Below are positions 1 to 39,724 of a stretch of 40,751 nt of DNA, piece by piece. A program made the position numbers and the translations under genes. The notes beneath the pieces were generated by a model. That model saw only the letters and a list, made by a program, of their open reading frames with translations. It was not told where the DNA came from and made no database searches. This DNA comes from Macrostomum lignano. Lineage: Eukaryota. The stretch spans positions 1-40,751 of the forward strand of contig NIVC01004605.1 in assembly GCA_002269645.1 (NCBI GenBank), read 5' to 3'. Numbering within the stretch: position 1 is the stretch's first letter; each line of letters begins with the position of its first letter.

Positions 1-990
1 AGCCACCATGTCAAACATTAAAGAGCCACCATGTTGAACATTAGAGAACCACAATGTCAAACACAAGAGAGCCACCATGTCGAACATTAAAGAGTCACCA
101 TGTAAAACATAAAAGAGCCACCATGTCGAACTTTAAAGAGCCACCATGTCAAACGTAAAAGAGTCACCATGTCGAACTTTAAAGAGCCACCATGTCAAAC
201 GTAAAAGAACCACCATGTCGAACATAAAAGAGCCGACATGTAGAACATAAAAAAGCCACCACGTCAAACATGAACGAAACACCATGTCAAACATTAAAGA
301 GCCACCATGTCAAACATAAAAGAGCCACCATGTCGAACATTAAAGGGCCACCATGTCGAACATAAAAGAGCCACCATGTCAAACATTAAAGGACCACCAT
401 GTCAAACATTAAAGAGGCACCATGTCAAAAATTAACAGCCACCATGTCTAACATTAAAGAGCCACCATGTCAAACATTGAAGAGCTACCATGTCAAACAT
501 TAAAGAGCCACTTTGTCGAGCTTTAAAGAGCTACCATGTCAAACATAAAGGAGCCGACATGTAGAACATTAAAAAGCCACCACGTCAAACATTAACGAGC
601 CACCATGTCAAACATAAAAGAGCCACCATGTCGAACATTAAAGAGCCAAAAGTGTAAAACATAAAGGAGCCACCATGTCGAACACTAAAGAGCCACCACG
701 TCGAACATCAAAGAGCCACCATGTCGAATATTAAAGAGCCACCATGTCAAACAATAAAGAGCCATCATGAAGAACATTATAGAGTCAGAATGTCGAACAT
801 TAAGGAGCCACCATGTGGAACATTAAAGAGCTACCATGTCAAACATTAAAGAGCCAGCATGCCAAACATTAAAGAACCACTTTGTCGAACATTAAAGAGC
901 CACCATGTGGAACATTAAAGAGCTACCATGTCAAACATTAAAGAGCCACCATGTCGAAACATTATTGAGCCACCATGCCAAACATAAAAA
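1..990. repeat. 23-bp tandem minisatellite (consensus AGAGCCACCATGTCAAACATTAA), ~43 degenerate copies, runs off the window start
   Basis: AGCCACCATG recurs at a 23-nt period (positions 1, 24, 70 ...) with scattered substitutions; no unique spacers. Confidence 0.95.
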
Positions 991-1064
991 GAAGTGTCAT
1001 ACCAAAAAAAAAATGGAACCACTATAAAGCTAAGGAAATTGTTGCACTAGCTACTTGTTCTCTG

Positions 1065-1330
1065 GTGGATGCTTGCTATTTAAGGATGGATACTTGCTAC
1101 TTGCAATTGGGGGGATGCTTGCTACCGGGTTAACTTGCTATTGGGAGATGCTTGCTCTTGGGGGTGGAGGGAACTTGCTATCTGAGAGGGGGTTGCTAGA
1201 TATCTATAAGGTCTCTTTGTATCCCAGGTTATGCTTGCTATCTGGGGTTGCATGTGGTCTGGGGGATGCTTGCTATCTGGGGGATGCTTGCAGTCTGGGG
1301 GATGCTTGCTATTTGGGGATCGATGCTTGA
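1065..1330. repeat. Degenerate short tandem repeat (GGGGATGCTTGCTATCTG-like, ~17-19 bp units)
   Basis: ATGCTTGCTA / ACTTGCTA core repeated about ten times, most regularly at 1261-1330. Confidence 0.75.
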
Positions 1331-2475
1331 GTGCTGTCTTGGAATGTTTTTAGAGGGAATGTCTGTTGTTTTTTATGAAGGCTTTATTTCCCTGTCCATT
1401 TGTTATTCGTAAAATGCTTAGGAGACTAGACAATATGGGGACTTCAAGGGGGTGGAAGGAATCGATCGCTCGAAAGCTACTTAAAGCTGTTATTTTTGGT
1501 AAGGCAAAGTTGGGGTTGGGGATTGACGGTGAGGGTGGGTGTTGGGAAGAGAGGGCTGGTGGATGAGGAGAGAGGGCGGAGGCTCAGGAGCAGGGTTTAT
1601 TTTGTGCGCTCCTAAAAAGGAATTGGGAAGACTTTTGAATGCTATGGGGGTAGAGAGAGCGCGCGTGGGGGAAAGAGATTTTCACTTTAACTGAGCCCAG
1701 GCGAGGAAGAATTCAGTGTTGAGCGAAGGCCAGAATGCAAAAGATTTCGGCCTCGCGTAAGGCCAGAATGCCAAAATGAAAAGGAATACAGTCAAATACA
1801 AATACATGAAAGCGATTTTGGCCTTTCAGTTTTTTTGGCTGCATACTATTAATTATAAGTCCTGTAACTCAAGTGAGAATACCGCTACTTTTCACCCTTA
1901 GATTATGTTGATTTTTTTGCTGTCCTAGGGAGGGGGGTGGTAGACTGATGCTATCCCCCTTAGATGAGTGGTTGTAAGTATTGCCACTACTGACAACTAC
2001 TGAGTTTCGGTTTGAGATTTTTAACGCAATTGTCTAATGATTTCTGCAAAGTTATAGTAGCTGTCGTAATCTTTTACATAGGTTACTCCATACTTATGAA
2101 ACCAGTGTCTTTGGAGAGCTAGATTAATATTAGGGACATTGATATCAACGCCGGGCCAATATTTTCTCATGTACTCGCTGCATTCAAGTTTGCATTGGTA
2201 CTTGGATTTGTACAATGGATGAGGCTGAGTATAATAGGAACCTGGAGAGACAACTGGAAACATTTCTATTAAGAATTTAATTTTTTTCAAAGGGTAAGGA
2301 CCCTGTGCTGATAATTTAAAGTCTTAGGGATTTGGTTTCGCGTTGCAAATTGAATGTGTGGAGAAGAATGCAGATTCTTTTCTGATTGTTTCGAATATGC
2401 TATGGGTGGATGTCAGTGGATTATAATGGGATTATGTTCGCAGTTTTCGGAACAAGTAGGACACCTGTTATGCCC

Positions 2476-2607
2476 TGATTCTGTCGGGGATAATACGGAT
2501 GGATTGAATGGGATTATGGAGGACGTTTTGTGAGCGAGTGCGACTCTCTCTTTTTTTCTGATTCTGTCGGGGATAATATGGATGGATTTAATGGGATTAT
2601 GGAGGAG
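2476..2607. repeat. ~49-bp direct repeat pair
   Basis: CTGATTCTGTCGGGGATAATA(C/T)GGATGGATT(G/T)AATGGGATTATGGAGGA occurs at ~2476 and ~2558. Confidence 0.8.
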
Positions 2608-2840
2608 GTGAAAAATTTTGTCCTAAAAGTCCCCTCATGCATTCTATATAATATCTATAACAGCAAACTCGTGAAAAACGTTCACAATAAGTGCCATACT
2701 CTACTTACACCAGTAGTGGCGTTGTAATATTATTCCAGACATGCATGTAGTCAGTAGCAAGCTAGATTACTCATCACACAGTGTCTTTTTTCACACAGGA
2801 TGAGGTTTTTTAGTAATTTAATTAGTGCCAAGGAGTTCAT

Positions 2841-3158
2841 GTGCACTTTAAGCGACATTGTCACACAACCGGCGAGAGGCATTACTACCCCTTCCGCCGA
2901 CACCCCTGAGCAGGCACACAAGCACGCGGATATACATGTACGTACATGTACGCAGTCATATGCACAGGCACACACTCACACAGGAGGGTACAGCGGCCTT
3001 AACTTTATTTATCGTTAGGCATGTACACTTCACTGTGCCTTGGGGTTGGCCGATCAATTTAGTTGATTGAACGAACAGAGCCAAGCCGAAATTTTAATTT
3101 AGCCCCCAAATTATTTAATGTGACTGCACTTGGAATCGAGCCTGGGCCGCCGGCACAT
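2841..3158 (-). mobile_element. SINE family B copy (tRNA-like head truncated)
   Basis: Colinear with 11938-12246 from GTGCACTTTAAGCGACATTGTCACACA through TGACTGCACTTGGAATCGAG; lacks the outer part of the head. Confidence 0.8.
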
Positions 3159-4104
3159 TTGTACGGTTGCAGTTAAGGAATTCTGGTCAGCAATTTTTGA
3201 GTGAACTTGGCGCCAAACATTATAACGAAACTTGCACCATTCGATCAGAAATTGACGGTAGTAACATATACAAACTTTTTCGAAAAACATATGCTTTCTT
3301 GCAAAGGTCAAGCAAATTTTTTGACTGTAAAACTAATTTGTGATTATTGTGTAGAGCCAAAACGGACTGACTTAATTCTGATTCTGAAAAGGATTGTATC
3401 ACAACCGTGACTCCGACTTGAATTGCGTCACAGTGCGGAAAACAGTGCAGAATAGCAGCATAGCATAGTGCACGACTGATTTAGATTGCTTAACCATATT
3501 GTTAACTTTAATAGACTGCTACTGACTGACTGAGAGGTTGATTATGTCAAAACTGCTTCCTGTGACTTTTGCTCTAGCCGACTTAGTATGAATGTAGATT
3601 TATTACGTGCTACAATTCATGTCTTAAAATGCAGCAACGTGGTTTCAAATTTTGAAAATTTTGAAAATGCTGAGATGCTGAGATAAGCAAAGCTCATGGA
3701 TGGTGGGAGAGTTGTTGAGATGTCAATTTCTCTAGGAAATCGTTGAGATTCTGAGGTAAGAAGGATGGAGTGACGCAAAGGGGCGGTTGCAATAGGGTGA
3801 TCATGGGTATAGTACAGGCTGCATGCAACCAATATCCACGAAAAACTCTTTACCTTAAAAAAATCACCGGGCGTGCACTTGCTTTCCTTACGTCACTTTA
3901 GCGTAAGAGCAGGTAGGGCTGAGGACAGCCAGCAAGGCAGGATTTGGTGAGCTCAAATCTATAAATAGCCCTTTGCCGAAGATTGAAAACCACACTCGTA
4001 CAAGACATGATTAAAAATTATTTGTTTGTATTTCGGTCATATAGAATTTACTCAGCCGCTTTGAAACGCAACACAGCGGGCTTGTTGCAATTTCACGCAA
4101 TCTA

Positions 4105-5606
4105 CAGGTGGTCCAGGAAGGTCTCCCAGATTACAAACAGAGTTTTCTCTGCACTGGATTGATGAATTGGGCTGAAACTTGACCTGCTTAAACTTTATTC
4201 TGAATATGATTTTTTGTCTAAAAATCTTAGCAATTGCTAAAAAAATCACGAAGTTACAGCAGTTTTTCTAAAAAACACCGTTTTCACTTACTACTGATGA
4301 GCACATTTCATTCCAGACTTACACGACTTACACGCCAGTTGAAAGATTTAAAATGGCATCCTGGCTGGATGAATTGAAGAGTCCGCTGTTGTTCCAGCGG
4401 CGATGGCGTCGTGAGTTCAATTTGGCTGCCAAACAACGCCCTCCAGATGCTAAGACCATCAAAGATGCACTTAAGGTGGCCTGTGAGTTTTGTTTGGCTC
4501 GACGACCAATTTCTGGGCGTCCACGGACTGCTCGTTCTGCTGAGAATGTGGAACAAGTTGTTCAACACTTCAAGGAGCGACCACAACAGTCAGTACGTCG
4601 TGCGAGTCGGGAGCTGAAAGTTAGCCATCAGTCCATCCTTCGTGTGCTGGATAAGAGTGGCTTTCACCCCTATCGCATGCGCCGTCAACAGGCAATGAAT
4701 GAGGCCGGCAATGAGGCGCGAGTGCTATTCGCAACTGATATGCTGGAGATGTTTGACAGTGATCCTGAAATGTTAACCAACATCATTTTCTCTGATGAGG
4801 CTCATTTCTCCCTGCATGGCCACAATAACACCTGGAACTCGCGGTATTGGGCCATTGAAAACCCAGATTTCTCTATCCAGATGCCCCTTCACAGACCACG
4901 CGTCTCATGCTGGGCTGGAATTTGGTCCCACGGCATTGTTGGACCTTTCTTCTGTGAGGATGCGCAGGGTGCAAATGTTACGGTGAATTCTGAGCGGTAC
5001 GTGGAAATGCTGGATCCAAAGTTTCTGCCTGTGGTTCAGAATTACGAGGCATTTGTTGCTGGTGACTTGTGGCTGATGCAGGATGGTGCTCCAGCCCACA
5101 TCGTGCTTAATGTGCGTGAATGGATTCAGCACAACTTTGAGGAGCGCGAAATCGGACGCTATGAGACAATTCATTGGCTTGCACCCAGTCCTGATCTCAA
5201 CCCTAAGGACTTCTTTGTCTGGGGATGGGTGAAGGACAACGTCTACCGACAGCCAGTGGACAGCCTGGATGAGCTAAGGCACGGAAAACGCAGCTAATGC
5301 ATGATATGCCAGTGGATTTTGGTGTCAACAGCCTTAATAGCTTTAAGAAGCGCCTGCAGACTTGTATCGATAACAAAGGTCATCATGTGGAGCACTGACT
5401 AACAGTTGCATAGCAGATTGTGCTAAAACCCTACTGATTTAACAAAAAACTGCTGTAACTTCATGATTTTTTAGCAATTGCTAAGATTTTTAGACAAAAA
5501 ATATTTTCAGAATAAAGTTTAAGCATGTCAAGTTTCAGCCCAATCCATCAATCCAGTGCAGAGAAAACTCTGCTTCTAGTCCGGGAGACCTTTCTGGACC
5601 TCCCTG
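4105..5606 (+). mobile_element. Tc1/mariner superfamily DNA transposon, DD41D (rosa/Visitor) type, ~1.5 kb, ~165-bp TIRs, TA target-site duplication
   Basis: Left TIR 4105-~4268 (CAGGTGGTCCAGGAAGGTCTCCC...) is the reverse complement of right TIR ~5444-5606 (...GGGAGACCTTTCTGGACCTCCCTG); TA at 4103-4104 and 5607-5608; internal transposase ORF. Confidence 0.93.
4353..5398 (+). pseudogene. DD41D transposase with one frameshift near the C-terminus
   Basis: N-terminal HTH region, GRPRTAR linker, IIFSDEAHF, QDGAPAH and SPDLNPKDFFVWG with 41 residues between the 2nd and 3rd Asp. The ORF stops at 5297, but another frame continues ...FKKRLQTCIDNKGHHVEH* to 5398, the typical family C-terminus. Confidence 0.9.
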
Positions 5607-6019
5607 TATTTTGCTAAGCTGAAGTGAGATTCTTATCGTGTGATGGGTTGGGTTTCCGGTCCAAAAATATCAATGCGTTCATTCTACCCTCACGTTTGAC
5701 TATTTAGGTGGCTAGCTGGTAGTGCAGTTCATACGAGCCATTTATCTGCAACAGCTAGGTAGAGCTAGGGGCAGCAGTGTATACTTTGCACGGATGCATT
5801 TGCAAGAGGCCATAAACAAACTTACGAGTTTAAATATAAGCTGTTAGTCAAAGCTTCACAGTGTCGCAGACACAAAATTAGTCAACAGCTCTTGAATTTT
5901 TAATAATTCACTCTAACGTGCCAAGTAAGTTTTTACTGCCTGCCTGCTGTGTCTATTTTGTTTTCGTTTTAAATAACTAAAACAAGTTTTTCAAATGCAA
6001 ACGCTAATACGAAGGTTAT

Positions 6020-6090
6020 CTCTATCTGTCTCTCTCTTTCTCTCCTCTTTTTTCTCTGTCTTTTTCTTTCTTTCTCTCTCACTGAATCTA

Positions 6091-6145
<55 letters not shown>

Positions 6146-6215
6146 ATCTCTCCGTCTGTCTCTCCCTCTCTCTCCTCTCTTTGTCCTTGTCTCTTTCCCT
6201 CTCTCTCTTCTTTTT
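6020..6215. repeat. Polypyrimidine tract with pure (CT)n microsatellite core (~6097-6142)
   Basis: Directly visible CT dinucleotide run with degenerate flanks. Confidence 0.95.
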
Positions 6216-6296
6216 AGTTCGCTTTCAAAGTTATTTGGCGGTCTGTGCATCGGGAGCTGCGGATAACGGTGGTAGGGGAGACGGGGAGACAAGGAA

Positions 6297-6482
6297 TATG
6301 AGGAGACATGGAGATGGAGGCTCAAAAGTAATTTGTGACAAAAAGAAATAAGTAAAGAAACAGTACAGCTCGTAATTAAACCAAAAAGGGAAATACTAAA
6401 TTGCGACCATGCCAAACCTTTTTTTGCTTTTGTCTTTTTGTCACAAATTACTTTTGAGCCTCCATCTCCATGTCTCCTCATA
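6297..6482. mobile_element. MITE-like element: perfect ~49-bp inverted repeats around an ~86-bp spacer, TA at both outer ends
   Basis: 6298-6346 ATGAGGAGACATGGAGATGGAGGCTCAAAAGTAATTTGTGACAAAAAGA is the exact reverse complement of 6433-6481. Confidence 0.65.
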
Positions 6483-7387
6483 ACTCAAAATAAGTTTTGA
6501 GACTTTGCCGCAACAGTTCGTTCTTTATTCAATGTTAAACTGAACATTGTATACCAAAACTCTGTCACAGAAACTCTTGTTTGAGTTTGAGATTTGTCTG
6601 AGAGCTCATTCTAACTCTGGTGAGACTGGTATGAATTCAGTTCCCCGTTACACTATTTAGGGTTGCTATCAGGGGTGAGATTTTCACTGAATGCTTGAAA
6701 TGGTCTCTCCTCCTCCCTCCACTTCTGTCCGCCCCTCCTATCCTCGTGCTCTCCCTCCTTCCCTTTCCTCTCTTCCTTCTCCTTTCTCATTTTAAGGAAG
6801 AGACCTGCACCAGTGATTTCGGGGAGGTGAAAAGGCGTCAACTTTTCATTTTATAAAAGCAAAATCTGAAGCAATTGTTCGCACTTTGCTGCTTCTATCC
6901 AACCAAAATACACTACTGTCAAGTTTTACCGCGAATAGTAGCATCTTGTCTTGAACAGATTGTTTCGATCCCGTAGCCACATTTTCCCCACTAAGGCTTG
7001 AATTACTGGCTCAATTGACGTGGAAAATGATTTATCCCCTTTTGGACCCGCGTAATATGCAGCTTAAACTGGGCACCCGATGATATCAGTAGCGAATGAA
7101 CTCAAGGTCTTACTGGCCGCATCGGCCGCCGCCAAAGAATCCGCCGCCAAGTGGAGCACTGTACTGCTGTTGCTGCTGCTGCTGGTGGGGTCTTGTAGCC
7201 TATGGTTCATTTATCTTGCCGGGCAACGCTTTTGCCCCCATTCTGGAGTGTCTCTTTATTTGTGTGGCTATTTTAAATACACCCGTTGCAAGCCCTCTCT
7301 CCCTTGCTAAGTTTGGCGAAGCAACCACGAAATTATCGTTTACACTTTCAAATTTCCAGCTAAGCCGCCACCGTTCGGCCTGTCTTA

Positions 7388-10300
7388 ATGAGCGAGGTCA
7401 CCGACGTGAAAAAAATTATACGCTTAAGACCGTCAAGTAGGTCTTTTTTGAATGATGAATGTAGTTTAAATTCCCATAGAAGAGTTTTTACCTGTCGAAC
7501 TTTTAGCTCATTCTTCTGAACTTTACGAAAGGAAGGTTAACACTACCAAACTGTTGTCTTTATTATTGCTTTCAGCTCTTCTTGAAAGTAGTTCTGCCGA
7601 TGATTTCAAATTTGAAGATGAACTATGTAAGTTTTACAATCAAGTTTTGCTAAAATTTTTCCTTGCAAACGAACTAAAATACGCGATGTACAGATTTTAC
7701 ACTGTTGAGACTGGTAGTTTCAAGTAGAATCCTGTAGCTATTTCTGCTTTGCTCAGAGCGGCGACCCTTACTACTAGAGTTATAGAACTGAACTAAGCTA
7801 CAATAGCAAAGAAAACATGCTGGTCTCTTGAATAGCCAACTATGAAAAACCCTATGCCAAATAATGATATTTAAGGTTCCCGAAGATTGGCTCTGTTCTT
7901 CGACGCTCGCAATGAGTCAGTGACAGATGAGTACGCCGACTTTCTAAAAGAGTGCAGTTTTAACGTAAAGAGGAGCCTGGAACAGCAGTATGAAAGCAAA
8001 CTGGGCTCGTGTCTATCCGACTCCGTGAACAATTCCGAGGTCCAGCAGCTAATTGTAGTCGTGATAGCTGGCAATGCTTTCATGAAGGACGTCCTAGATT
8101 TCATGACAATGGGTACATTTCCCAACTGCCAAAACAGATGTTTATTATTTTGTCGCGCTGGTGAAGAAAGCCTGGATGACACGAAACTTGCAAACGAATT
8201 TTCGAATGCGAATTTTAAATACAAGTGTACAACTATCGCTTACATCGTGGCTAAGGAAACTAAAAGCGTACAGGGCTTCTATAGAAGCTTCCTGGATGAC
8301 TGCAGGTGCAGTTGGGAGACTAAAAGTATATTTTCTATCCTGGAGACGGCATTGAAGCTACCACTCGCTTACGAGTCCCTTTCTCTGTATCATAGAGAAG
8401 GAAAGCTCGGTGGAGATTTCCTGCGCGACATATTCAAATTTATCAGGGAACCCAAGAGCAACCTTGATGAAGTTGATGCCTTACCAGCAGCATCAGAGCA
8501 GACTGCTCAAGACAAACCGACTGATTGGATGCGCGAGAATGCCTCAATAATCTATCCGAATCGGCGCAATCTGAAAAAGCCTCGAGCGTTGGTCATCATC
8601 AAATATGACCGAGGAGACTCTCTATACTCTGCTCTGCAAGTTGACCGCAGCAGAGTTATGCGTATGCTAAAAAATCTTGGCTACATTGTAACGGACGTGC
8701 AAACCCGCTCCAATGACGCCTTGAAAAGAAGGATCGAGCTTTTTTCAGAAGATACTGAACACGGTGACTCCTGCATCCTTGTCGTGCTGTCCCAGACGCA
8801 GCAGCAGCTGAGCAGCTCTACTGTCATGAATTTGTACAAAAGCTTGGCTATTGGCGAAAAGCTCGAGGCCAAGCCCCGACTCTTTATTCTGCACGAGTGG
8901 GATGTCACAACACTGCAGACAGACTCTGTTACTGATGGTTTCAGCAGCAATACTTATGAGATCATTGAAGATGCTGTGGACGGTTTGCAGGCCTATTTTC
9001 GCAATCATGATTCAACCATCAAGGTTCATCCACACAGCGGCATGGTGTTCGGTCGATCAGTTAGTAGCGATGTGACAAGAGCAGAGGGCAGCGCTTTTAT
9101 TCAGACACTGTGCGAAACTTTCAGACAGTATGGTCACACAGAGGACGTGGCCTCTATGATTACCATAATTAATGAGCACAAACGACTAGATGAATCTGTG
9201 CCCAAGTGGTTTATTCAGACTGGCAAGCTCTTTTATCTCATGGGAACAGACGGAATCCAGGGTAAGAGAACTTTTTTTAGCTCAATGCATGTATACTTTT
9301 CAATTCGAACTTTGGCAAAAGTGATTTCAGTTTTGGCAACACGATAAATTATGACTGTCACTGTTACTGTCAAAGTGACTTAAAATTCTTTGTGATCAAT
9401 ATCATTGTAGTTCTGTAGCTCAGACTGCTTGTGCCACCGCCAACATTTTTTGGTGTTAGTGTGCGACACTGGTGGTGTAAATTTTGACCTAACGGTTCCT
9501 TCTAGTTGCCTTTAAACAATACAATCTTGAATGACAAATCTGTGATTGACTGCTTTGGCCGTGTTTACATTTATGTCGAGGTACTTCACTAGTCGTCTTC
9601 AGTCTCTCCTTGTTGTTGTCAAAATTGGTCACTTTTGCCAAAGTCGAAATTGAAAAGTTACAACTATGCAGAAATCATTATTGCATAATCATTTGCACTA
9701 TTTTGCTTTTAGCTACCGGTCAGGAGGTTTCGCAACAAAGTCTACAGAAGAAATCTAAAGAGCCTAAACAAAGTCTAGAGAAGAAATCTAAAGAACCTGA
9801 AAGCGCCAGAATTGGTAAGTGGCATATTAAATTATCGAGAAACACCTCTTACGACGTAGAGATCCGATTCATGCGTTATAGCCATATAAAGCTATGCGCA
9901 ACATCTTTGCAAGACTACTCACTTCTAATTATATCTGTTCCGTTTTGCTGCGATGCCCAAACATTTTTATCCTATGAAGAATTATTTCATCTAAAAACCT
10001 TCTGATAAGTACATGTATTTCAGAGAGATACGCTTGAGTTATAAACATTATTAGATTCATGTATTAAAGAACAACTTTGCTTGCATGAGTCAATAAAACT
10101 CGCTAATCTCAGCAAAGCTCAGCCGTACTTGCACTTTTTAATTTCAGATCGAACAGGATTTGCGATGATTCTCACCGAAGGACAGTTTGATGGGGCCAGA
10201 AACTATCAGATGTTTCTGGAGTATGCAGCCTTCAAAGTGCTCTTCGATTACACGGATGGCAATTCGAGCTCAATCAAGACAGCCATCATGCTTCCAAAAG

Positions 10301-11607
10301 AAACTGAAGGAAATGTTGTCCTTTATCTAGTTGTACGCACACATCGCAACGACAACGTCTTGCAAGAAATAGTCGATGAACTTTCTAAACAGCAATCGTC
10401 TCAAAAGTGCAGCAGTAGCATTTTGCTTATCTTCTGCGAAGTGTCCGAGTCTGAAGAGAATTTCGCGAACACTCAGATGCCCGAGGAGCTACCCGAGAAG
10501 TTTAGCCTTGTCAGAGTTGCGGAGTCGGTGCGGCGTGATTGAATTTCTGGACTCCCTGCTGGAATCTCCCAGGAAGAACATCTCTCTCAATGGCAGCCTT
10601 GTGGTTGGTAGAGATTTTTCCTGCCACTCCTGCCATCACGGCATAATGCACTGCAAAGTCAATGACGAAAACCCAGGCTGGAGGAAGAGAATCACTTGGC
10701 TTGAAAACTTTTATATAGAAGAGAGTTCATCGCACCCAAATCTGTCTTCAATTGACGTTAGTGACGACACGCAGACGAGACCAGCAATAAGAGGTTCTCT
10801 CCGATTAGAGAGTTTCAGAAGCGAATGGAATGCACCTGGATTAGACACTCAAGAGTGCAAGGCTGTAGCCCTCATCGTTCAAACGTTGTCTTCCAGAAAA
10901 AGGAACTATCTACTCGGTTCGGAAGTCAGTACGACTGCCAGCGAATGGCTGACACTTTGCTCAGGCTTGGCTACTCAGTGAGCATCAGGTCGAATCTCAC
11001 CAAAGTAGAAATTGAAAGCGAATTAGACATGTTTTGCAGTGACGCACGACACGGCAGCTCAGTCGTAGTTGCTTTTATGTCTCACGGATGTCTCGGTGAA
11101 GTAGTTGGTTTCGACGGCGAATCAGCGAAGGAAAGTAAAATTCTAAAACGAATTTCCAAAGGAAACCGCACAAGTGAAAAGCAGCAATTGGTCATCTTCC
11201 AGAACTGTCTAGACCCTGGTCGATTGCCTAAATCAGAGCTGTCGTTTTTTCCTGGCATGATCGTCGCTCACTCGACTTCGCCGAATGAAAGCAGCTATCG
11301 AATGACAGACAGAGGCAGTCGGTTCATCCAGTGTCTGTGCACTGTTCTCGACCTGTTCGCCGACACGTGCGACATTGCGTCAATGGTTCCTATCGTTAAT
11401 TATGTGGTGCAAAACGCTACTTTTTATATGGGCATCAGCCAGCTGCCCTGGTGGTCTGTGCAGACAAGCAAGAAATTTTGGATTCGAGTCAATGAGCCTC
11501 CTCAAAGCAGTCGTGAATCGCGCCATCAAGCCAATTCAGCTAGGAACCAAACAACGAATGACTGCAGGGTTCAGGTGACGGAACTTCTTCAAAAAATGCG
11601 GTTGTAA
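7388..11607 (+). CDS. Multi-caspase-fold protein gene 1 (degenerate caspase-like + pseudo-caspase + degenerate caspase-like + caspase); last exon has two frameshifts (pseudogene or assembly error)
   Basis: Proposed exons 7388-7436 (ATG, MSEVTDVKKIIRLRPS), 7576-7626, 7876-9261, 9713-9814, 10148-11607; all introns GT-AG and phase 1, giving a continuous frame. Terminal domain has FMSHG (His 11083-11085) and IFQNC (Cys 11206-11208). The exon 3 caspase domain has VLSQT / ILHEW instead. Frameshifts at ~10530 and ~10881 inferred by comparison with gene 2. First exon less certain. Confidence 0.82.
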
Positions 11608-11937
11608 TAATCTACGCAGAGGCAGTTTATCAATTTGACTATTGTGGTGACTGAATAGGTTTAATTGCTTATATTGTAGCTACCAGTGGCAATATTTTAA
11701 TTCTTACATTTTTTCTTAGCGGTTCAAAATCTGATGAATTTCTGTGAGAGCGGTATATATGATTTTAACATTCAAACCATAAAAAATTTACTATTGACAA
11801 CTGTTGGGACAATTAAAGATAACGCCTGTTTATAGGCGTTTGTAAATTTGTTTTACTTTGAAGACTTTTTACACAAATATTAAATTAATAAACTGCTAGT
11901 TAGCTTCTTGGTTAGAGGCAGGGGGCTGTTTACCCTG

Positions 11938-12246
11938 GTGCACTTTAAGCGACATTGTCACACAATCAGCGAGAGGCATTACTGCCCATTCCGCCGGCTC
12001 CCCTAAGCAGGCACACAAGCAAGCGCGCGGATATGTATACAGTCATTCGTAAAGGCACACACGCACACAGGGGTGTACAGTGGCTTTAACAATTTTTATC
12101 GCTAGGCATGTACACTTTACTGTGTCTTGAGGTTGGCCCTTAAGGCCGTTACTTGCATGAGCAGAGCCAAGCTGACTGCACTTGGAATCGAGTATGGACC
12201 GCTGGCACATCAGAACGCCGCGTTAGACCACAAGGCTACGGCCCCC
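11938..12246 (-). mobile_element. SINE family B copy with complete tRNA-like head
   Basis: Minus strand begins GGGGGCCGTAGCCTTGTGGTCTAACG (A-box-like) ... ACTCGATTCC (B-box-like), followed by a body shared with 2841-3158, 13445-13650 and 24005-24160. Confidence 0.82.
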
Positions 12247-13373
12247 GTAATAAATTACTACGTAGTATAATAACATAATTATTACAAAAGGAGCGTGTTT
12301 CCGTAAGTGCTTCGATGGAACAAATTTGTTTTTATTGTTTTAATGAAAGACGTTAGACTGACCATTCTAAACAGTTTAAGCCAGTCTAAGTTAAAAACAG
12401 CAGCAGAAATGCTCTCGCTATAACTAACCGTTGCCGAATTTTTAATTGAGAAAAATGTTATCCTAGTGTATGTTTTCATTATTAAAACTAATTATAAATG
12501 ATTACAAAGTTTTCCTGATTTTTAATGTTTTATTGAAAGAAGTATAATTAGCATTGGAGTACGAGTTGTATTTAATGTAATCGATCTTTTGAATTTGAAT
12601 GTATCAAAATCGCAAACTGCGACTGGCCCTCGATAGTAGTGCATCACTGCATTAGATTTTCCTCCAGCTCTGATTATTTTATTTATAGTAAACATAAAAC
12701 TAACAGGCTCGTAAACTGCTGATTCCTAATTCAATTGTATATTTAAATGTGAACGATTATCCAATCAAGTACAACAACTAAGTTCAAATAAATCAAAGGA
12801 AACTAAGAGTTTTCCGCTTGTCACCGAATGTCTGCTTTTTTTTATTTTGACCAACGTTTAGTATAACTTAGCTAGTTAATATATAGGTGTATCTACAAGT
12901 GTATAGGAGTACGAGTGCATATAGTAGTATAGAAAGTATATATACATGGTTACTAGCTTAGCTAGCTTAGAATTAGTTTTACATTACAAAAAAGCTTTAT
13001 GGGATATTTTAACTTTCCATCCAACAATCCAAATTTCCCCCTTTCAGATGAATTACAAAAAAATTGTTATATAACTAAGCCTTATCTGGTATTCGAAGAA
13101 ACGATCCAACTCAGTATCGATGGCTGATTTTCCTGACACATTTGAGACCGAAAGCCCAGCTACTAGTAAGTGCAAACCTACAATAAAATTATTTAGCAAA
13201 TAAATTCGAACAAACATAGGCTGATTGATTCCTCTGAGTAATTTTTCCCACATTTAAATTTTCAGTATTGCACGAACTTTCAACAGTTTCAGGTCTGTTA
13301 GATGTTTAAAACAAATTTATTACTTATTTAAAATCATTCTCCAATACTTTTAACAAGCTGCTTATGCTTCATA

Positions 13374-16300
13374 ATGGCAGAAACTACAGAAGCAAGTCGT
13401 GCTACTCGCAGTGCATTTGGTAAGATGCGCGCATAGGGGGGTTTGGGGGGGGCAGAGCTGCTCAGCGGTGAACGCGTCGGATCAATATTGGCCAAGAAGG
13501 GTTTGTCATGCGATTCAAACCCCGATGACCAGTACTCAACACACAGAGAGTGTACATGTTGGACGATTAGACAGTCAAGGGCCGCTGTACACCCTGTGGG
13601 AGCATGTGTGTATGAATGTGTATTGGCGCGCTTGCATTTGCTCAGGAGTCAGAAAAGTTTTTAGGGCCTTCGGCGAGGGGTGCCACGAATATCCTACTAA
13701 ATATTATAAAAAGTATCTAATTGTTTGTTTTTAAATATATTTGTTTATAGATTAATTTTTGTTCTAAATTGCAACAAAAACTTACAGGCATCATTCAAGA
13801 TGTACAGGCAGTATCGAAGCTTCCCAGCTGGCAGGGAACATTCGGTGAGCATTTCTCAAGGAAACTTTAAGTAGAATATTTTTAATTGTCCTTTGCACTT
13901 CAACTATAACATACAGTTTTGCAAAACTTTTACAATTGTAGCTCATCAAAGGCTACTGCTAGTATTCGCTGATAAGATCACAGCAGAAATGGACAGATAC
14001 ATTGAATTTATGAGCTCATGTTGCGGCTTTTACAATGAGAAGCTCGCCCTGAACAGTCACCTTGCCGAATCCGAGACCCTGTCTCGAGCACCAGTCAGGC
14101 AGATTGTCTGCCTAGTAATTTTCTCCGCTTCGCAGCCACAGCGCTACATGAAGGACTACCTAGATTTTCTGAACCAATTTGACGAATCCGTGGATCAGCT
14201 ACTGCTGTACTGCAACTTGTCCGAGACAGAGACCCAAATCGATCAGGATCTGCGAAATCAATTCTGCAGCAGTGCTTTTCCTTATCGAAAGTCTAGCATT
14301 GCTTACACTTTCGGAACTTCCTATGGAGTCGGACGATTTTTTGATAAATTTAAGAACGATTGCAACTTGAAATGGAATCGTACTGTTGGCCTTTGTGACG
14401 TCCTGCTGGAATCACTTAATATAGACCAGTCGTCTGAACTTTACATTAAAAAGCCTAGAAGCGAAAAGTGCTTCTTCCCACGCGAAATATTTTACCCTTG
14501 CAGCTCACAAGAACTGATCAAAATAGCCGGCATTGAGTCCTTCACCAACCGAGTTGACCCGGATACTCTGGCGTTATACGGTGATTTTATATATCTGAAC
14601 AGCCGCATACAAAAGCCGCAGGCCTTGATCGTTCTAAACATCAAACTAGAGAGCGGCAAGACAAACAAGTCAATGCACGCAGACTGGAGGCGCCTTCTTT
14701 GGCTGTTTGATAAGCTCCAGTTCGAGGTCAAAGATGTTCAAACAGACGCGTCAAGCTGCAGTCAGCTTGAAGAATGCGTGAAGACTTTTGCTGATTCTGA
14801 GTTGCACGGTGACTCCTGCTGCCTGGTTGTGCTCTCCGAAGGCTGGCTAGAAAGCAGCTGCATTGACAGCATCAGTAAGAGCATGGCCTTCGGAAAGCTT
14901 ATCAAGGGTAAGCCGAGGCTGATCATCATTCAGGAGTACCAACCGAAGTCCTCACAAGCATCGGATGCTGCGCCGAAGTCGCTCCCCCAATTTCTGCCTG
15001 ACGCAGTGGAAGCGATGCGATTGCAGTTCAGAAACGACAAGCCTGAGGTCAGAGTCCATCCGCTAAGCGGAACCGTATGGTGTCAGTCCGAAGCGTCGGA
15101 CACCGAAAGCGACAATGCGACACTGCTGATTGAAATCATCTGCGAGACTTTCATCAATCACTCAGCCATCGAGGATTTGGTTTCGATGATTTCAATCATC
15201 AACGAGAGACTGCAGGACGCCCCACCCACTTGGTGTGTGCAGACTGCCAAACTTTTCTATGTTGGAAATACTGAGTTCACAGGGAGCGGAAGCGCTAGTA
15301 AGTTTATTTATGTCTTTAAAAAATGAAGGAGATTGTTTATTTCAAGTTTACTGTCAAAATAAATTTTCAATTTCAGGCAAGGCTCAATCCGAAAATACCC
15401 CTGAAAATCCTGCACCTGCAACCGATCCGTTAGCGACTTTGCAGACATTGCAAGGCTTAGCAGCAGAGTCGGACAGGCTGCGTCCCATTCTCGATCAAAA
15501 CAGTAAGTATGAACTAAAAATTTGAGACAAAGATCGATTTGGAGGTCCCAAAATTTTTGAAGCTATAAACTTAATGAATTTCAGATCGCCCTGGAGTAGC
15601 ACTGATTCTCACTGAAGGCTTGTTCGACAAAGTCCGAGATTATCAAATGTTTCTGGATTTTGCCGGCTTTCAAGTAATCTCGGAACGAATCGACGGTATT
15701 GGCGCTTCTTTGAGAGAAATTGTGACTTCATCGGCCGCTCAAAGCCCTCTAGCAGTTGTGCTGATCGTCAAGAAGCACCAGGTCGGAGCCGGCGTAGATG
15801 ATTTAATTGCGTGCATGTCGGAGACTGCAACCAAGCACGGAAACAGTTCCCTACTCATCTACTTTGAGATACTAGGTGCTGATGAGCCGCCTTCTGAGAT
15901 TCGCTTACCGAATGAACTGCCAGAGAAGTTCAGCATAGTTTGCTACCAGGGCACTCGAGACCGAATCGATCTCTGCCTCGACGTATTTCTAAAAACACCG
16001 AGAAAGAAACTTAAAAACAGTCCAATTGTGGGTTATAACTTTGAGAAGCTACCTTACAAGAAAAAAGAGCCAAAAATGATGTACCGATCCAGCGATAAAA
16101 ATCCTGGCTGGAAGCTGGCGCTCAAATGGCCAGAGAGCCAAAATATCAGGGGTGACGACATCATGAAACAGGACCTATTCCGCACAGCCAGTATGCGAGA
16201 GAAATGGTTCCCAAAGAAACCAATTCCACAGAATGTCACTATGCAGAGCAGGGCTCTAATCGTTCAGAATGTTGTCTTCAAATCCGGCGAGATCAGATTT

Positions 16301-17014
16301 GGCACCCAGAACGACTGTCAGAGGCTGACGGACTGCCTTACAGGCCTGGGGTTTCGAGTGTCAATCAGAACGAACCTCACGGCAGCTGAAATCTTGCAAA
16401 CTGTGCAGCTCTTTGCTGGTGCCAACGACCACGGCCGCTCCTGCGCCTTGGCAATCATGTCCCACGGATATCTGGGAAAAATTTTGGGATGCGACGAAAG
16501 GACTGTGAAAGAAGCAGATATTCTTGATCAGCTGAGCAAAGGCAGTGGGCTTCAGGGTAGATCAAAGTTTGTTGTGTTTCAAGCGTGCAGGCCATTGGAA
16601 GAACAGCATTCCAGCAGCTCAGCAGAGCGATTGATTAGACCCTATCCCGACATGGTGATTGCTCACTGCACCTCCCCAGAGGAGTTCGGTTATCGAAACC
16701 GCTTCGAGGGCAGCTGGTTCGTGCAGAGCCTGTGCTCCGTGCTGAATGAATGCGGAGCCGATGCGGACATCCTATCAGTGATAACTGCGGTGAACTGCAT
16801 GGTCCTGACCTGCTTCAATCGGTCCGACTGTAAAGAGCAGCGGACTCAGCAGCCGTGGTGGCTGCTGCAAACGAGAGGCGCTTTTGTGCTCGGCAGCGGC
16901 ACACCAATGAAAGAGATCGGCGACACCAATCGTAGTGCAGCTGCACCTGCTGGGAGCCGAAAGTGTCGGGCAAGCGTTTGGAAAAAGTTGGAGGCATTCT
17001 TCGCGAGGTGGTGA
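13374..17014 (+). CDS. Multi-caspase-fold protein gene 2, intact, ~1004 aa (four caspase-fold units, only the C-terminal one with a catalytic dyad)
   Basis: Exons 13374-13419 (ATG, MAETTEASRATRSAF), 13788-13844, 13942-15297, 15377-15502, 15585-17014 sum to 3015 nt (1005 codons); all introns GT-AG, phase 1. Terminal domain has AIMSHG (His 16463-16465), VFQACR (Cys 16586-16588), IRFGTQND and YRNRFEGSWFV. Exon 3 domain has VVLSEG / IIQEY (no His, no Cys). Confidence 0.9.
13445..13650 (+). mobile_element. Diverged SINE family B-related copy in intron 1 of caspase gene 2
   Basis: Head with GCTCAGCGGT (A-box-like) and GATTCAAACCC (B-box-like); body ACACAG..AGTGTACATG..GCTGTACACCC..GCGCGCTTGC..TGCTCAGG matches the reverse complement of 11938-12130. 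Confidence 0.65.
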
Positions 17015-18434: not shown

Positions 18435-18520
18435 AGATAGATAGATATATAGATAGATAGATAGATAGATAGATATATAGATAGATAGATATATAGATAG
18501 ATAGATAGATAGATAGATAT

Positions 18521-18557
<37 letters not shown>

Positions 18558-18576
18558 CAGATAGATAGATAGATAG
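18435..18576. repeat. (GATA)n microsatellite, imperfect
   Basis: GATA units interrupted by GATATA and GACA variants. Confidence 0.95.
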
Positions 18577-18888
18577 TAGATAGCGAGAAAGAGCGAGCGA
18601 AGCGAGCTCTTTCGAGCTTGCTTGCCGCAGCCAATCAAGCTGAAAGCACGCACACAAGATCACCGGAAACGATTAAGGCAGCTGGAAAGCCAATGGGCGC
18701 GGTAAGCGCTTTTATCCAGAGGAACTACCTACTGGAACCAGCCATGCCGAACGAAAATCAGACTACTCAAGTAGTGCAAAAGAGTACGTGCAACTACCGA
18801 GAAATCTAATTTTCGTAACCGCTCCGGTGCAGGTCCTGGCTATAGATAGTAGATAGCGAGAAAGAGCGAGCGAAGCGAGTAATCGTAA

Positions 18889-19394
<506 letters not shown>

Positions 19395-19810: not shown

Positions 19811-21480
19811 CTATAAGTGATTCTCCGACACCTCTCCGGAGAGAGGAATTCGGCTTGACTTGGGCTGCTGTTGTTCCACCCGATCCGCCATCGCTTCTGC
19901 CGGCCCTTCAAATAGACTCTGCGTACTAACGAGGAAAAACTTCTTATGCGTCTGCACTGTCCAGCATGGCAGTTGTAGTGACAGAACTTCTCCATTCAGT
20001 TCAGGCTGTTTAAATCCGCGAACCATGGCGAAGTTGATCCTGGTGAGCATGGAGACCAGATCCTCTTTATGGGCGAACTCGTAAAAGGTTGCGCACAGGG
20101 CTAAAATGAAGCGACTGCCGTAACTACTTCGAAAAGCGAAGTCCCCAGGCGATGTCGAATGGGCCACGATCAGCCCGCTCTGCTCAGGCGGCGGCTCAGA
20201 TCCGCTGGCAGGATTGCCTTGGTGAATGCCCACCTGGATGGCCATCTCCGTCATCATCGCGCAGACTCTCTCCGAGTTCGCCGCCAGTTTTCCGGCGACG
20301 GCCTCGCTCAAATCGATCCGACAGGCTTGAATGAGAACCAGTCTGGGCTTGGCCCTGACACCGGCGCCTCTGGACATCAGTTGGAGTATTTCAAACTCTT
20401 CAACGATGCCCAATTTTTCCCCTCTTCTGTAGTCTGTGCCGCAGATAATGCCGAGGCTACCGTGCGACATGATAGCCAGGACGCAAGCGTCTCCATGGCT
20501 GTCATCATTGGCAAAGTTTCTCACCGCCTCCCGCATCTGCTCAGCTGTCAGGTTAACCATTTCTGTCACACTGAACTGCATAAGAGTCAGCACGTGACGC
20601 AGGTTCTTAAAATCCATGTAGCTCTCGGGTCGATTCGAGGTTGGAAGCACGAAACTTACGTTATGAATTATCAGAGCTTTTTTAGTAGCACGATTTCCAA
20701 TGTAGTAAACCAGATCGTCAATCGGATTGGGATCAGTCTTCAGTCTCTCGGCTGTTTCGGCGTCCAGCTGCTTCAGGTGCGATCCGTCGCCAATAATTCT
20801 AGCGAACTCCTCCCTGTCCTTCAGCATTTTCACCGGCAGCCGTGGCTGGATGAACTCGCCAGTCAAGCCATTCTGCGTCTTCAACCTGAACTTATCGAAA
20901 ACTTCGCTCTCGATTTCGTACTGAATCAACTCGCCGAGACCTCTGCTGTGCCATTTTTTCTTTTTTAGATCAGCGAGCAGCTGCAGGAAGGTCCTCACTT
21001 CATCTCGCATCTTCACGGTGATGCTCATGAGCACCATGTTGCGCAGATTCCTTCGACACTCGTCTGGCCTCATCAGCTTAACGCAGTCGGCTTTCTCTTC
21101 GGAGTACGTGTTGGAGATTCTGCAGAATATAAGCAGCTTCTGTGTTGAGTCATTTGCAGCCAAAAGCAGTTTGACAATTTCGTCAAGGTCGGCGGGTTCG
21201 TCAGACTCAAGCAGTACGACCACAACCAGCTGTTTGGCGTCCTTCGCTACGCCCTCGATTTCATTTTTTATGTCGTTAAAATCGGTCGATGGTACATAGT
21301 TGACAATGAATCCGCAGCGGTCCAAGAAGCGCTCATAGTCGCGAACTTCTAAGCAGCAGTTGACTTCCTGATTGTATGTCTGGCTGAATATAACAGCCCT
21401 GCATTGTCCACTGAATGAAGGCAGCTGGACGGGTTTCGGCGTTGGCGTTGTTTGCGGACTCGGTAGCAAAATTGGTTCGA
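19811..21480 (-). CDS. Caspase gene 3: N-terminal degenerate caspase-like domain + caspase domain (one large terminal exon; upstream exon(s) not identified)
   Basis: 552-codon ORF; splice acceptor TTTCAG ends at 21481 (phase 1). Motifs KKALIIHNVSF, NRPESYMD, CVLAIMSHG (His 20464-20462), KPRLVLIQACR (Cys 20323-20321), LIVAHSTSPG..FR..GSRFI, QLPCWTVQTHKKFF. Confidence 0.9.
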
Positions 21481-23347
21481 CTGAAATTTAAACACATTAA
21501 GAATTTTTTTTTCAAAACTACTGATGAACTTACATGAACATATTACTTATAGTGTATGTGCAACAGCTCAGTTTTTGGTCTGTGGACCGGCTACTTCAAA
21601 CTACATGTAGTACCATTATATAGCATATAGTAGCATATGTACGAGTATATTGCAATAGTTATGTGATCGCAGATACCATTTTATATCTGCTGTACGCTCG
21701 TATACTGCTACCTGTACCAGCATTAGAAGTGCTTTGTCAGTGCCCCAGCAGCCCACACTGCACCAGGCCGATACTGCGCGACCCAACGCCAAAGTAGGCA
21801 ATCTCTCTACCCGGAGCGTCCTAATTCCCGGAGACCACTCGCTATATAATACCAATAGTAACAGTGGGCTGAGGGCCTGGGGCTTTGAAATCTTCACTTA
21901 CGCTACAAATTCGTACCTTAATGTAAGTAAACCTCGACATACTGCTAAAAAACAAGGGGTATTGCAAAATTTTCGCAAAATGTGTCTACTGCAAACGACG
22001 GAAAATATCGAAATTCTGAGCTGAGAAATTCTAGCTAAAACTCCTTGCACATCTGCTCTATTTTAAATGATGAGACTGTAAAGCAAAGGACTGAGTTTGG
22101 TGCCACTGTCACTCAGGTAAGAGTCATTCGAATTTCGCTTAAAAGTATTTCAAATAGCTAGTCTAAAGATTCATTGACAACCTCAAAGATATTAAAAAAT
22201 TAATATCTGTTAATATAAATTTAGAACGGCTTCGACATAAATAAAAACGAAAGCGTACCTTCGCCTTCGGTTTCGTTTGGAATATTTGTGGGAGCAGTCG
22301 ATCGTTTAGGGGCATCGCAAGCCTCGGCCATGGTGGGTAGCATCGGATGCTATATAGCTTGTTTTGTGGCTTCTGCTTGAAAACACAGCAACAAGAATGC
22401 ATAGCTACAGTGTATAGCTGCTTTTTATAGAACTTACAGTTAGAGGCTACATGTATAGAGCCCATTTATGGTGCCAAACGTAAATTGTGACGTCTGTTTC
22501 TATAATTAAACAGTTCTGGAAAAGAGATTTGCTAGATAGATACGCTTTATATGGCCTAAGGGCCCAGATATTCTGCAGTTTAATACAGACTGCTTTGCAT
22601 GATATGGAAGATACGAATTCAAGAAATATACGAGCGTACGATGCAATTTACGCAACTGTAATACACTACCGCTACAGTTTGACCAGTGCAATTTGCATTC
22701 GTTGCGGATGTGTTAGTTAAAGCATTGATAAATAAATCCGAAGATATAGCTACACAAATTAACTTCAGGGGCACATTGTAGCTGTACCTGTTATTAGCCA
22801 TTCTAAAAGAAAAGAGTCGAGATACAGCTTCTGCATGATCCCTTTGGTTTAATTTGTTTAATCAAATTCCTTAGCCTAATTAAGAAGCTAACGTTATGGA
22901 GCTAATTTTTGGGTGCCTTAATACTTAATTTGTTAAAAATTTAACTCAATGAAAGTACAAGTTAAGGAATATTTCACTTAGATAGAAATATAACTGCTAA
23001 TTTGATAAATAAATTGCTAAGAGTTCTAGGACATATTGACAGAATCGTTATCTAGTTGATAACAATTTCTAGAAGCGAAAAATGTTTAAGTAGTTATTGT
23101 GACTTCAGCACCGATACATAAGCGAGTACATGTAAGGCTTTTTGTCCAAGTTTGATTCACAATTGACTCAAAGTTATCAAAGTGACGTACTTGAATGCAA
23201 ACTTTCACAATCGGATTTCTTTATTTGATAAAATTGTCTCTTAGCAAAATTCAAATCATAGCGTTTTCAATTTTTAGAACATAGTCAGCTTGTCCAGCTG
23301 TCTTACAGTTTTCATTCATTCTCTTTCGCATTTTTCATTCTCTTCTG

Positions 23348-23998
23348 TTTGAAGATTGGGGGCCGGTGATTTTGCAGATTGAGAGCCGGTGGTTTTGAAG
23401 ATTGAGAGCCGGTGTTTTTGCAGATTGAGAGCCGGTGGTTTTGAAGATTGAGAGCCGGTGTTTTTGCAGATTGAGAGCCGGTGGTTTTGGAGATCGGGGG
23501 CCGGTGATTTTGGAGATTGAGAGCCGGTGGTTTTGGAGATTGGGGGCCGGTGATTTTAGAGATTGGGGGCCGGTGGTTTTGGAGATTGGGGGCCGGTGGT
23601 TTTGGAGATTGGGGGCCGGTGGTTTTGGAGATTGGGGGCCGGTGGTTTTGGAGATTGGGGGCCGGTGATTTTGAAGATTGGGTGCCGGTGATTTTGGAGA
23701 TTGGGGGCCGGTGATTTTGGAGATTGGGGGCCGGTGGTTTTGGAGATTGGGGGCCGGTGGTTTTGGAGATTGGGGGCCGGTGGTTTTGGAGATTGGGGGC
23801 CGGTGATTTTGAAGATTGGGTGCCGGTGATTTTGGAGATTGGGGGCCGGTGGTTTTGGAGATTGGGGGCCGGTGATTTTGGAGATTGGGGGCCGGTGGTT
23901 TTCGAGATTGGGCGCTGGTGGTTTTGAGATTGGAGGCTGGTGGTTTTGGAGATTGGGGCTGGTGGTTTTGGAGATTGGGGCTGGTGGTTTTGGAGATT
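23348..23998. repeat. 23-bp G-rich minisatellite (TTTTGGAGATTGGGGGCCGGTGG), ~28 copies
   Basis: Regular 23-nt period with GGGGGCCGG / GAGAGCCGG variants grouped in blocks. Confidence 0.95.
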
Positions 23999-39656: not shown

Positions 39657-39724
39657 CTGGCAATCATTTTGGATGTTAAGTTTTTCTTACCTACTGTAAG
39701 TAATTTTAGGTTAAACTTTCCTTG

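Follow-up and report, generated by a model that had tools for sequence, protein, structure and literature searches.

Two tandem genes for four-unit caspase chains

We analysed a 40,751-nt stretch of the genome of the flatworm Macrostomum lignano (contig NIVC01004605.1, positions 1 to 40,751 of the forward strand, hereafter the window), which carries two tandem genes on the plus strand, genes 1 and 2. Each encodes a chain of ~1,015 amino acid (AA) residues with the layout X domain (A1), pseudo-caspase (A2), linker, X domain (B1) and active caspase (B2), where X is a domain of ~150 AA that is unrecognised by current domain libraries (Table 1). The junctions of the large exons A and B are all GT-AG and all in phase 1, and they fall at equivalent positions in both genes. 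An earlier note on this DNA had described two tandem genes for four-unit chains with a single catalytic unit, and this description is borne out by the splice phases, alignments, residue pattern and transcript-based annotation. Its five-exon models hold for gene 1, whose N-terminus from two mini-exons is reproduced exactly in the database entry BOX15_Mlig033010g1 (P0166), but not for gene 2, which has six exons, including three 5′ mini-exons from ~13120 for ~47 AA. The latter were placed by tblastn with the N-terminus of PAA75222.1 (P0003), giving a donor at 13846/13847 in phase 1.

PAA75222.1 (1,017 AA), encoded at a 95.7% identical paralogous locus, is the counterpart of the full gene 2 chain. 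The GenBank annotation of M. lignano rests on transcripts derived from RNA-seq and on trans-splice and poly(A) data (PMC5730564). Because PAA75222.1 comes from this annotation and spans both large exons, the join of exon A to exon B has transcript support, at the 95.7% identical copy and not at the window sequence itself, which backs the earlier assignment of both exons to one gene. UniProt A0A1I8GM93 (P0001), an older prediction for the paralogue of gene 2, has exon joins that shift the frame, and its exon model was not used as splicing evidence. The same four-unit layout is found in paralogues elsewhere in the genome, namely P0007 and P0154, the latter being essentially gene 1; these two, as well as P0006, P0025 and P0156 mentioned below, are encoded at other M. 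lignano loci.

Table 1 Positions in the window of the exons and domain units of the three caspase genes
Feature	Position	Strand	Details and evidence
Gene 1 exon 1	7388-7436	+	Start codon, MSEVTDVKKIIRLRPS; GT donor, phase 1; identical to N-terminus of P0166
Gene 1 exon 2	7576-7626	+	TLLESSSADDFKFEDEL; AG/GT sites, phase 1; exact match to P0166
Gene 1 large exon A	7876-9261	+	Open reading frame (ORF); Pfam C14 4e-11; alignments
Gene 1 unit A1 (X domain)	~7878-8342	+	Within exon A; spacer separates A1 from A2
Gene 1 unit A2 (pseudo-caspase)	~8562-9260	+	Dyad positions SQT (8793), HEW (8898)
Gene 1 linker exon	9713-9814	+	34 AA, Lys/Ser/Glu-rich; AG/GT, phase 1 to 1; placed as in gene 2
Gene 1 large exon B	10148-11607	+	Three-frame reading; Pfam C14 1e-27; frame broken by 1-nt deletions
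Gene 1 unit B1 (X domain)	~10150-10555	+	Within exon B; spacer, then B2
Gene 1 unit B2 (active caspase)	~10858-11495	+	His codon 11083, Cys codon 11206
Gene 2 5′ region	13120-13846	+	Mini-exons ~13120-13164 (MADFPDTFETESPAT...), ~13380-13430 and 13787-13846 (IIQDVQAVSKLPSWQGTF)
Gene 2 large exon A	13942-15297	+	95% identity to P0003 residues 48-500
Gene 2 unit A1 (X domain)	13944-14393	+	Within exon A
Gene 2 unit A2 (pseudo-caspase)	14589-15296	+	Dyad positions SEG (14838), QEY (14937)
Gene 2 linker exon	15377-15502	+	42 AA; AG/GTAAGT, phase 1 to 1; also in P0003
Gene 2 large exon B	15585-17014	+	Pfam C14 7e-35; PDB CED-3, caspase-7; AlphaFold2 and Foldseek
Gene 2 unit B1 (X domain)	15587-16006	+	Within exon B; spacer, then B2
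Gene 2 unit B2 (active caspase)	16217-16882	+	His codon 16463-16465, Cys codon 16586-16588
Gene 3 (single module: X and active caspase)	19811-22343	-	Main exon 19811-21457; 5′ exon ~22260-22343

Positions 1-16688 of the window match the end of contig NIVC01001024.1 (GCA_002269645.1; locus L003) at 99.8% in a nucleotide alignment, in which ~25 single-base indels, in either direction, make up most of the differences. By this comparison L003 and the window are two versions of one M. lignano locus, and the single-base indels in both versions look like long-read assembly error. A paralogous locus, L001 on NIVC01000896.1, shares 90-96% identity with the window, and a second, L002, was used beside it in the deletion comparison below; the M. 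lignano genome is highly duplicated (PMC5730564). For the gene 1 paralogue at L001, GenBank gives a product of only 318 AA (PAA75221.1; L001 7318-8274, window equivalent ~10650-11607), whose first residue is a Met of the B1-B2 spacer and which covers the end of that spacer and B2, with exons A and B open at this locus. PAA75221.1 may be a short isoform with the active caspase only, or a partial transcript.

The homologue search was exhaustive, and statements on the range of the family rest on the best 150 matches listed. Close database relatives of the window proteins are M. lignano entries only, and word-indexed protein searches matched P0001, P0166 and one metagenomic caspase. Family proteins are already deposited, under names such as hypothetical or 'caspase p20 domain-containing' protein, and a literature search with the locus tags and accessions of these genes found no paper that names them.

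One predicted active site and one pseudo-caspase in each chain

The B2 domains of genes 1 and 2 (E values in Table 1) and the caspase domain of a third gene, gene 3 (5e-34), match Pfam Peptidase_C14 over its 21.4-bit cutoff. The closest solved relatives of gene 2 B2 in a PDB sequence search are CED-3 (1.5e-22) and caspase-7 (9e-20), and the Foldseek matches of an AlphaFold2 (AF2) model of the gene 2 B module are all caspases (E ~1e-12; CED-3, 3e-12). By profile match and predicted structure, B2 is a bona fide caspase. Five key residues (caspase-1 numbering: Arg179, His237, Gln283, Cys285 and Arg341) are complete in the gene 3 caspase and in both B2 domains, with the catalytic motifs MSHG plus FQACR (gene 2 B2), FQNCL (gene 1 B2) or IQACR (gene 3). 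The SHG and Q-x-C motifs pointed out earlier are therefore confirmed, the latter as Q-A/N-C, and are accompanied by the Asp-pocket residues Arg179, Gln283 and Arg341. It is probable from this residue pattern that B2 is a competent cysteine protease with an Asp-type S1 pocket, specific for Asp.

None of the five residues is kept in A2 of either gene; both dyad positions are substituted (Table 1), and the loop bearing Arg341 is gone too, so that the earlier statement that A2 lacks His and Cys extends to the Asp pocket. The Pfam C14 profile matched A2 of gene 1, and A2 of gene 2, taken as a lone ORF, stayed below its threshold and was clear only by the family profile. A2 is nevertheless a full-length caspase-domain homologue according to this family hidden Markov model (HMM; 3.6e-102, model positions 2-277), and P0003, P0006, P0007 and P0154 contain two Pfam C14 stretches apiece. 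Motifs specific to A2, such as (V/I)(R/K)VHP(L/H)SG, are common to genes 1 and 2, P0006 and P0007. A C-terminal strand, W-x-(V/I)-Q-T-x-K-x-F, is kept throughout the caspase-type units, A2 with its lost dyad included, and would correspond, by analogy with known caspases, to the β6 strand of the dimer interface. Each chain thus has one predicted-competent active site, located in B2. Pfam searches for CARD, DED and Death domains gave no match in the window ORFs or in full-length P0003, P0004, P0006 and P0007, in agreement with the earlier view that no CARD/DED-like prodomain is present.

A common module of X domain and caspase

Five large-exon products, namely A and B of genes 1 and 2 plus a 552-AA minus-strand ORF (19811-21469), align end to end as one module consisting of X (~150 AA), a spacer (~70-100 AA) and a caspase domain. 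The fifth product belongs to gene 3, which is convergent to gene 2, lies just beyond the coordinates of the earlier finding and was missed in the earlier note. Its His and Cys codons lie at 20462-20464 and 20321-20323, and its product is 96.5% identical to PAA82799.1 (P0004). A start of gene 3 in a two-codon exon giving MFIGQC... was considered and dropped, as PAA82799.1 points to a 5′ exon near 22260-22343. Modules of X and caspase were found only in M. lignano among the best 150 matches.

Other members of the family show further layouts. P0006 has A1-A2-B2 without B1, P0025 combines X with a caspase domain without the dyad, and P0156 consists of a pseudo-caspase, an X-like stretch (recognised by eye only), a Cys-rich stretch and an active caspase. 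The motif D-(E/K)-N-P-G-W ... W is kept in the B spacers of genes 1 and 2 (window ~10640-10700 and 16040-16100), and P0007 holds a variant of it, NDEIPKW.

Identity of the X domains

Neither Pfam C14 nor the TIR models of Pfam and PADLOC matched the X domains, even at E <= 10. An HMMER search of PDB sequences with an X profile was topped by a Rossmann protein designed de novo (E = 1.4e-3), followed by Sf-caspase-1 (E = 0.46), which is the best natural match and is aligned in the correct register; no TIR was found in these searches. With hhalign, nine X domains aligned with 18 classical caspases at P = 4.2e-4 and with the family's own caspase domains at P = 6.7e-4, the X-caspase probabilities being 27-34%. 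The score of 32 compares with 11.9 ± 1.9 (maximum 17.7) for 100 column shuffles, a distance of ~10 standard deviations, and with ~11-13 for reversed controls. The global alignment of X and caspase is colinear from β1 to α4 and brings a conserved Cys of X (LLIFC) to the position of the catalytic QAC. As controls, the TIR of MyD88, the sequence of which was checked against 7l6w, gave P = 0.14 and aligned out of register, and CheY gave P = 0.24. A jackhmmer search from X within the pool of homologues reached caspase p20 regions, which is only suggestive given the small size of this pool, which consists of caspases.

In an AF2 model of X alone (predicted local distance difference test score, pLDDT, 79; predicted TM-score, pTM, 0.77), β1-α1-β2-α2-β3-α3-β4 is followed by a 19-residue helix-free crossover and β5-α4, and the α5-β6 elements are missing or of low confidence. 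The β4-β5 connection is helix-free in caspases and contains a helix in TIR folds. We take the element order of the X model, its helix-free β4-β5 connection included, to be that of a caspase minus α5 and β6. A Foldseek search with this model placed procaspase-1 and caspase-7 in the top two positions (E ~3e-3, query TM-scores 0.54-0.56), with caspase-3 at 0.53; TIR-STING, SARM1 and the RRS1 TIR occupied ranks 3-6 (E = 4-5e-3, query TM-scores 0.35-0.42), and CheY-like receivers reached 0.45.

Taking the profile and model evidence together, we lean slightly towards X being a truncated and very degenerate caspase-derived domain; it may instead be TIR-like or a generic flavodoxin-like domain. The earlier note's designation of A1 and B1 as degenerate caspase units is accordingly favoured by weak profile-profile and structural signals and disfavoured by curated profiles, none of which matched. 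Its proposal of caspase-dimer-like packing for A1:A2 and B1:B2 is unlikely as stated, because X appears in the AF2 model without the α5-β6 interface elements and hence without the interface strand.

Divergence, constraint and reading frames

Between genes 1 and 2, the identity is 31% for A1, 37% for A2, 35% for B1 and 43% for B2, and the A units are nearer to the A unit of the other gene than to the B unit of their own, indicating that the four-unit layout predates the duplication that gave rise to genes 1 and 2. Throughout this divergence the frames of all four units remained open, in at least three paralogue lineages. The ratio of non-synonymous to synonymous differences (pN/pS) was determined between the window locus and its paralogue L001, a short distance, with one-sided P values against neutrality. 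B2 gave 0.27 (P = 1e-5), and the other units gave 0.64 (A2, P = 0.10), 0.63 (B1, P = 0.16) and 0.78 (A1, P = 0.28), or 0.68 (P = 0.035) when A1, A2 and B1 were pooled.

The frame of gene 1 exon B changes twice in the window, a feature that was missed in the earlier note, and a literal translation terminates at 10540. This is caused by three 1-nt deletions, two of G at ~10519-10520 and one of A at 10880, at least two of which lie within homopolymer runs; the second G deletion was placed slightly differently by two alignments. All three are absent from L003 (same locus, Mlig_3_7) and from the paralogous L001 and L002, and L003 carries nine 1-nt deletions inside gene 2 (13996-16030) where the window is intact. 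These comparisons suggest that the gene 1 deletions are probably assembly errors, not signs of pseudogenisation.

Other features of the window

A 314-AA ORF upstream of the caspase cluster (4353-5297, plus strand) has a weak match to a Tc3-type transposase helix-turn-helix (1.2e-5, under the Pfam cutoff) and is probably, on this match, a Tc1/mariner remnant. The interval between genes 2 and 3 contains long microsatellites, (AGAT)n and a perfect (ATAG)126 (18435-18583 and 18889-19394), which generate spurious 'SIYL' repeat ORFs. Four satellite-like tandem arrays were found at 1-989, 23348-23998, 39148-39416 and 39722-40751, with periods of 23, 23, 31 and 28 bp, respectively, of which the array at 23348-23998 gives rise to two long ORFs on the minus strand that are spurious and consist of proline-rich repeats. 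WSC carbohydrate-binding domains are encoded in two minus-strand ORFs, 24714-25223 (5e-13) and 27996-28523 (5e-15), which probably represent exons of a single gene or of two genes without relation to the caspases. An uninterrupted 906-AA ORF (32881-35601, minus strand) has no family match, the top one being NPV_P10 at 0.013.

Proposed model and alternative explanations

The architecture of genes 1 and 2 is observed directly, and a functional interpretation by analogy with known caspase pairs appears reasonable. We propose a model, to which we give an even chance, of an M. lignano module family that was doubled in genes 1 and 2, with a dead A2 paired to a live B2 in one chain and with X domains as caspase relics. 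The building block would be the module in which a spacer connects a small ~150-AA α/β X domain to a caspase domain; gene 3 represents one copy of this module, and genes 1 and 2 would derive from an ancient head-to-tail duplication of this module inside one gene. The N-terminal copy, A2, would then have lost every catalytic and Asp-pocket residue, and the C-terminal copy, B2, would have stayed competent. We infer that A2 and B2 of one chain associate via their conserved C-terminal strands, which would provide a heterodimer that is pre-formed and has only one active site, as in procaspase-8/cFLIP-L or coral caspase-X. The presence of this strand in both A2 and B2 fits pairing of the cFLIP/procaspase-8 kind, and an intramolecular A2:B2 pseudo-dimer is plausible on this analogy. 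A2 may set the activity level or the substrate range rather than being dead weight. X would most likely be the relic of a still older duplication of the caspase domain, truncated after β5/α4, and the X domains may stand in for CARD or DED as the pro-domain, regulatory or recruitment part.

Several points weigh against this model. Every caspase-like signal for X is sub-threshold, Pfam C14 is blind to it, and the Foldseek search with the X model gave nothing at E <= 1e-3, with TIR and CheY-like folds close behind the caspases; generic β-α-β periodicity may contribute to these signals, because the designed Rossmann protein outscored the caspases in HMMER. The AF2 model of the gene 2 B module is of moderate confidence only (pLDDT 62). 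The window-L001 comparison indicates weak recent constraint on the non-catalytic units at best, since only their pooled value departs from neutrality, and gene 1 is frame-broken in the window sequence as given. In addition, the 318-AA annotation at L001 means that shorter products may exist.

A more far-reaching version, which we hold tentatively and consider rather doubtful, derives all four units from caspases by two nested duplications, first of a caspase to X plus caspase and then of the whole module, so that the chain would be a covalent mimic of a caspase dimer with one active site, in which two more, vestigial caspase folds would serve as regulators. If true, this protease/pseudo-protease arrangement would be undescribed for any caspase.

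It is less likely that X is a TIR-type signalling domain and that these proteins are TIR-caspase fusions of an animal, reminiscent of type IV Thoeris in bacteria, in which X would switch the caspase on by TIR-style oligomerisation or nucleotide signalling, and we regard this explanation as improbable. UniProt names P0001, a fragment of the gene 2 paralogue, 'TIR domain-containing protein', a label that was not reproduced by the profiles used here, and the TIR structures at Foldseek ranks 3-6 follow the caspases at similar E values. Annelid caspases with a TIR prodomain are reported in a lophotrochozoan survey (PMC11463336), and bacteria couple a TIR protein with a caspase-like effector (10.1101/2024.10.24.620036). 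However, TIR proteins were found neither by the curated models nor among the PDB profile matches, the MyD88 control aligned out of register, and the query TM-scores of the TIR structures (0.35-0.43) lie below those of the caspases (0.53-0.56). Moreover, strands 4 and 5 of the X model are connected without the helix that TIR folds have at this place.

The chain could also be a precursor or one of several isoforms, from which the A half, the B half or B2 alone would be separated by linker cleavage, trans-splicing or internal starts, with the A half acting as a decoy in trans in the manner of cFLIP. This explanation would accommodate PAA75221.1, annotated with 318 AA although exons A and B are open, and the linkers, which are of low complexity and have Asp residues just upstream of B1 (for example gene 1, ARID/R; gene 2, PILD/Q); spliced-leader trans-splicing is widespread in M. 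lignano, and polycistronic precursors are present (PMC5730564). Yet the transcript-based pipeline, which cuts at observed trans-splice sites, left the 1,017-AA ORF of gene 2 whole, both genes have an in-frame linker exon whose phases are conserved, and the start of exon B has no start codon. We consider this possibility unlikely.

That the multi-unit proteins are decaying duplicates or assembly or annotation artefacts, with no function beyond the B2 caspase, is very improbable: the frame breaks of gene 1, the near-neutral pN/pS of A1, A2 and B1 taken singly (indistinguishable from 1), the duplicated genome with locus versions that differ by many 1-nt indels and the many two-caspase database entries that have two active domains, some of them annotated as separate genes in related species and thus suggestive of merged tandem genes, are countered by the absence of the gene 1 deletions from three other copies and the presence of similar deletions in gene 2 of L003, by the openness of four units at 31-43% identity in at least three lineages, by the conserved A2-specific motifs and by the pooled pN/pS.

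Comparison with known caspase systems

Pseudo-enzymes fused to active relatives are a recurring means of tuning proteases, and caspase-8/cFLIP is the textbook pseudo-enzyme case, acting in trans. The earlier note knew of no described caspase with this architecture, pending a search, which is too strong, since fusions of an inactive and an active caspase domain have precedents in corals (PMC4715348) and mammals (PMC12198278). What is new here is the doubled composite module and the unrecognised X domain, whereas the dead-live caspase fusion itself is already known. For the architecture as a whole, the homologue search sets the modules of X and caspase apart as an M. lignano feature within the matches listed. 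Two near-complete caspase domains occur in 18 of the best 150 matches; outside M. lignano mostly both are active, and some of these proteins are probably merged tandem genes.

Coral caspase-X (AmCaspase Xa-d of Acropora millepora) has a typical active caspase domain preceded by an N-terminal caspase domain in which His and Cys are missing; without the inactive domain it caused more killing in HeLa cells, and it was read as an intramolecular analogue of cFLIP/procaspase-8 and reported as restricted to corals (PMC4715348). Similar to caspase-X, flatworm genes 1 and 2 place dead and live caspase domains in one chain without CARD or DED. Unlike the flatworm chains with their four units, caspase-X has two, with no X before each caspase domain. 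An origin independent of caspase-X is likely because the nearest full-length relatives of the flatworm family are all from M. lignano.

Mammalian caspase-16 has a catalytic C-terminal domain and a pro-domain that arose from duplicated caspase-domain exons; the latter no longer has a catalytic site but should, by prediction, still adopt a caspase-like fold, and this feature was termed unique among known caspases (PMC12198278). This parallels both X and caspase within the flatworm module and A2 and B2 across modules, with the difference that caspase-16 reflects a single duplication in the mammalian lineage, whereas the flatworm proteins would carry two nested levels. In the cFLIP-L:procaspase-8 complex, a live caspase domain is joined by a catalytically dead, caspase-like one, and the resulting enzyme has a single site and altered activity (PMC4715348); we have adopted this as the mechanistic model for the proposed A2:B2 pair. 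There, separate gene products are joined via DED; the proposed flatworm partners, in contrast, would be covalently linked, and they have no DED match.

The annelid TIR-prodomain caspases (PMC11463336) resemble the flatworm module, as does type IV Thoeris (10.1101/2024.10.24.620036), in bringing together a small flavodoxin-like α/β domain and a caspase protease, but no TIR model matches the flatworm X. In Thoeris, furthermore, a nucleotide signal connects the TIR protein to a protease that is a protein of its own (10.1101/2024.10.24.620036). The same 2024 lophotrochozoan caspase survey gives a kinase-prodomain caspase as the only unusual one for M. lignano (PMC11463336), and published surveys missed part of the repertoire of this species. 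After those of corals and mammals, the flatworm family would be a third, independent example of a hard-wired dead partner, tractable because M. lignano has transgenesis (PMC5730564), and relevant mainly to the evolution of caspases and pseudo-enzymes.

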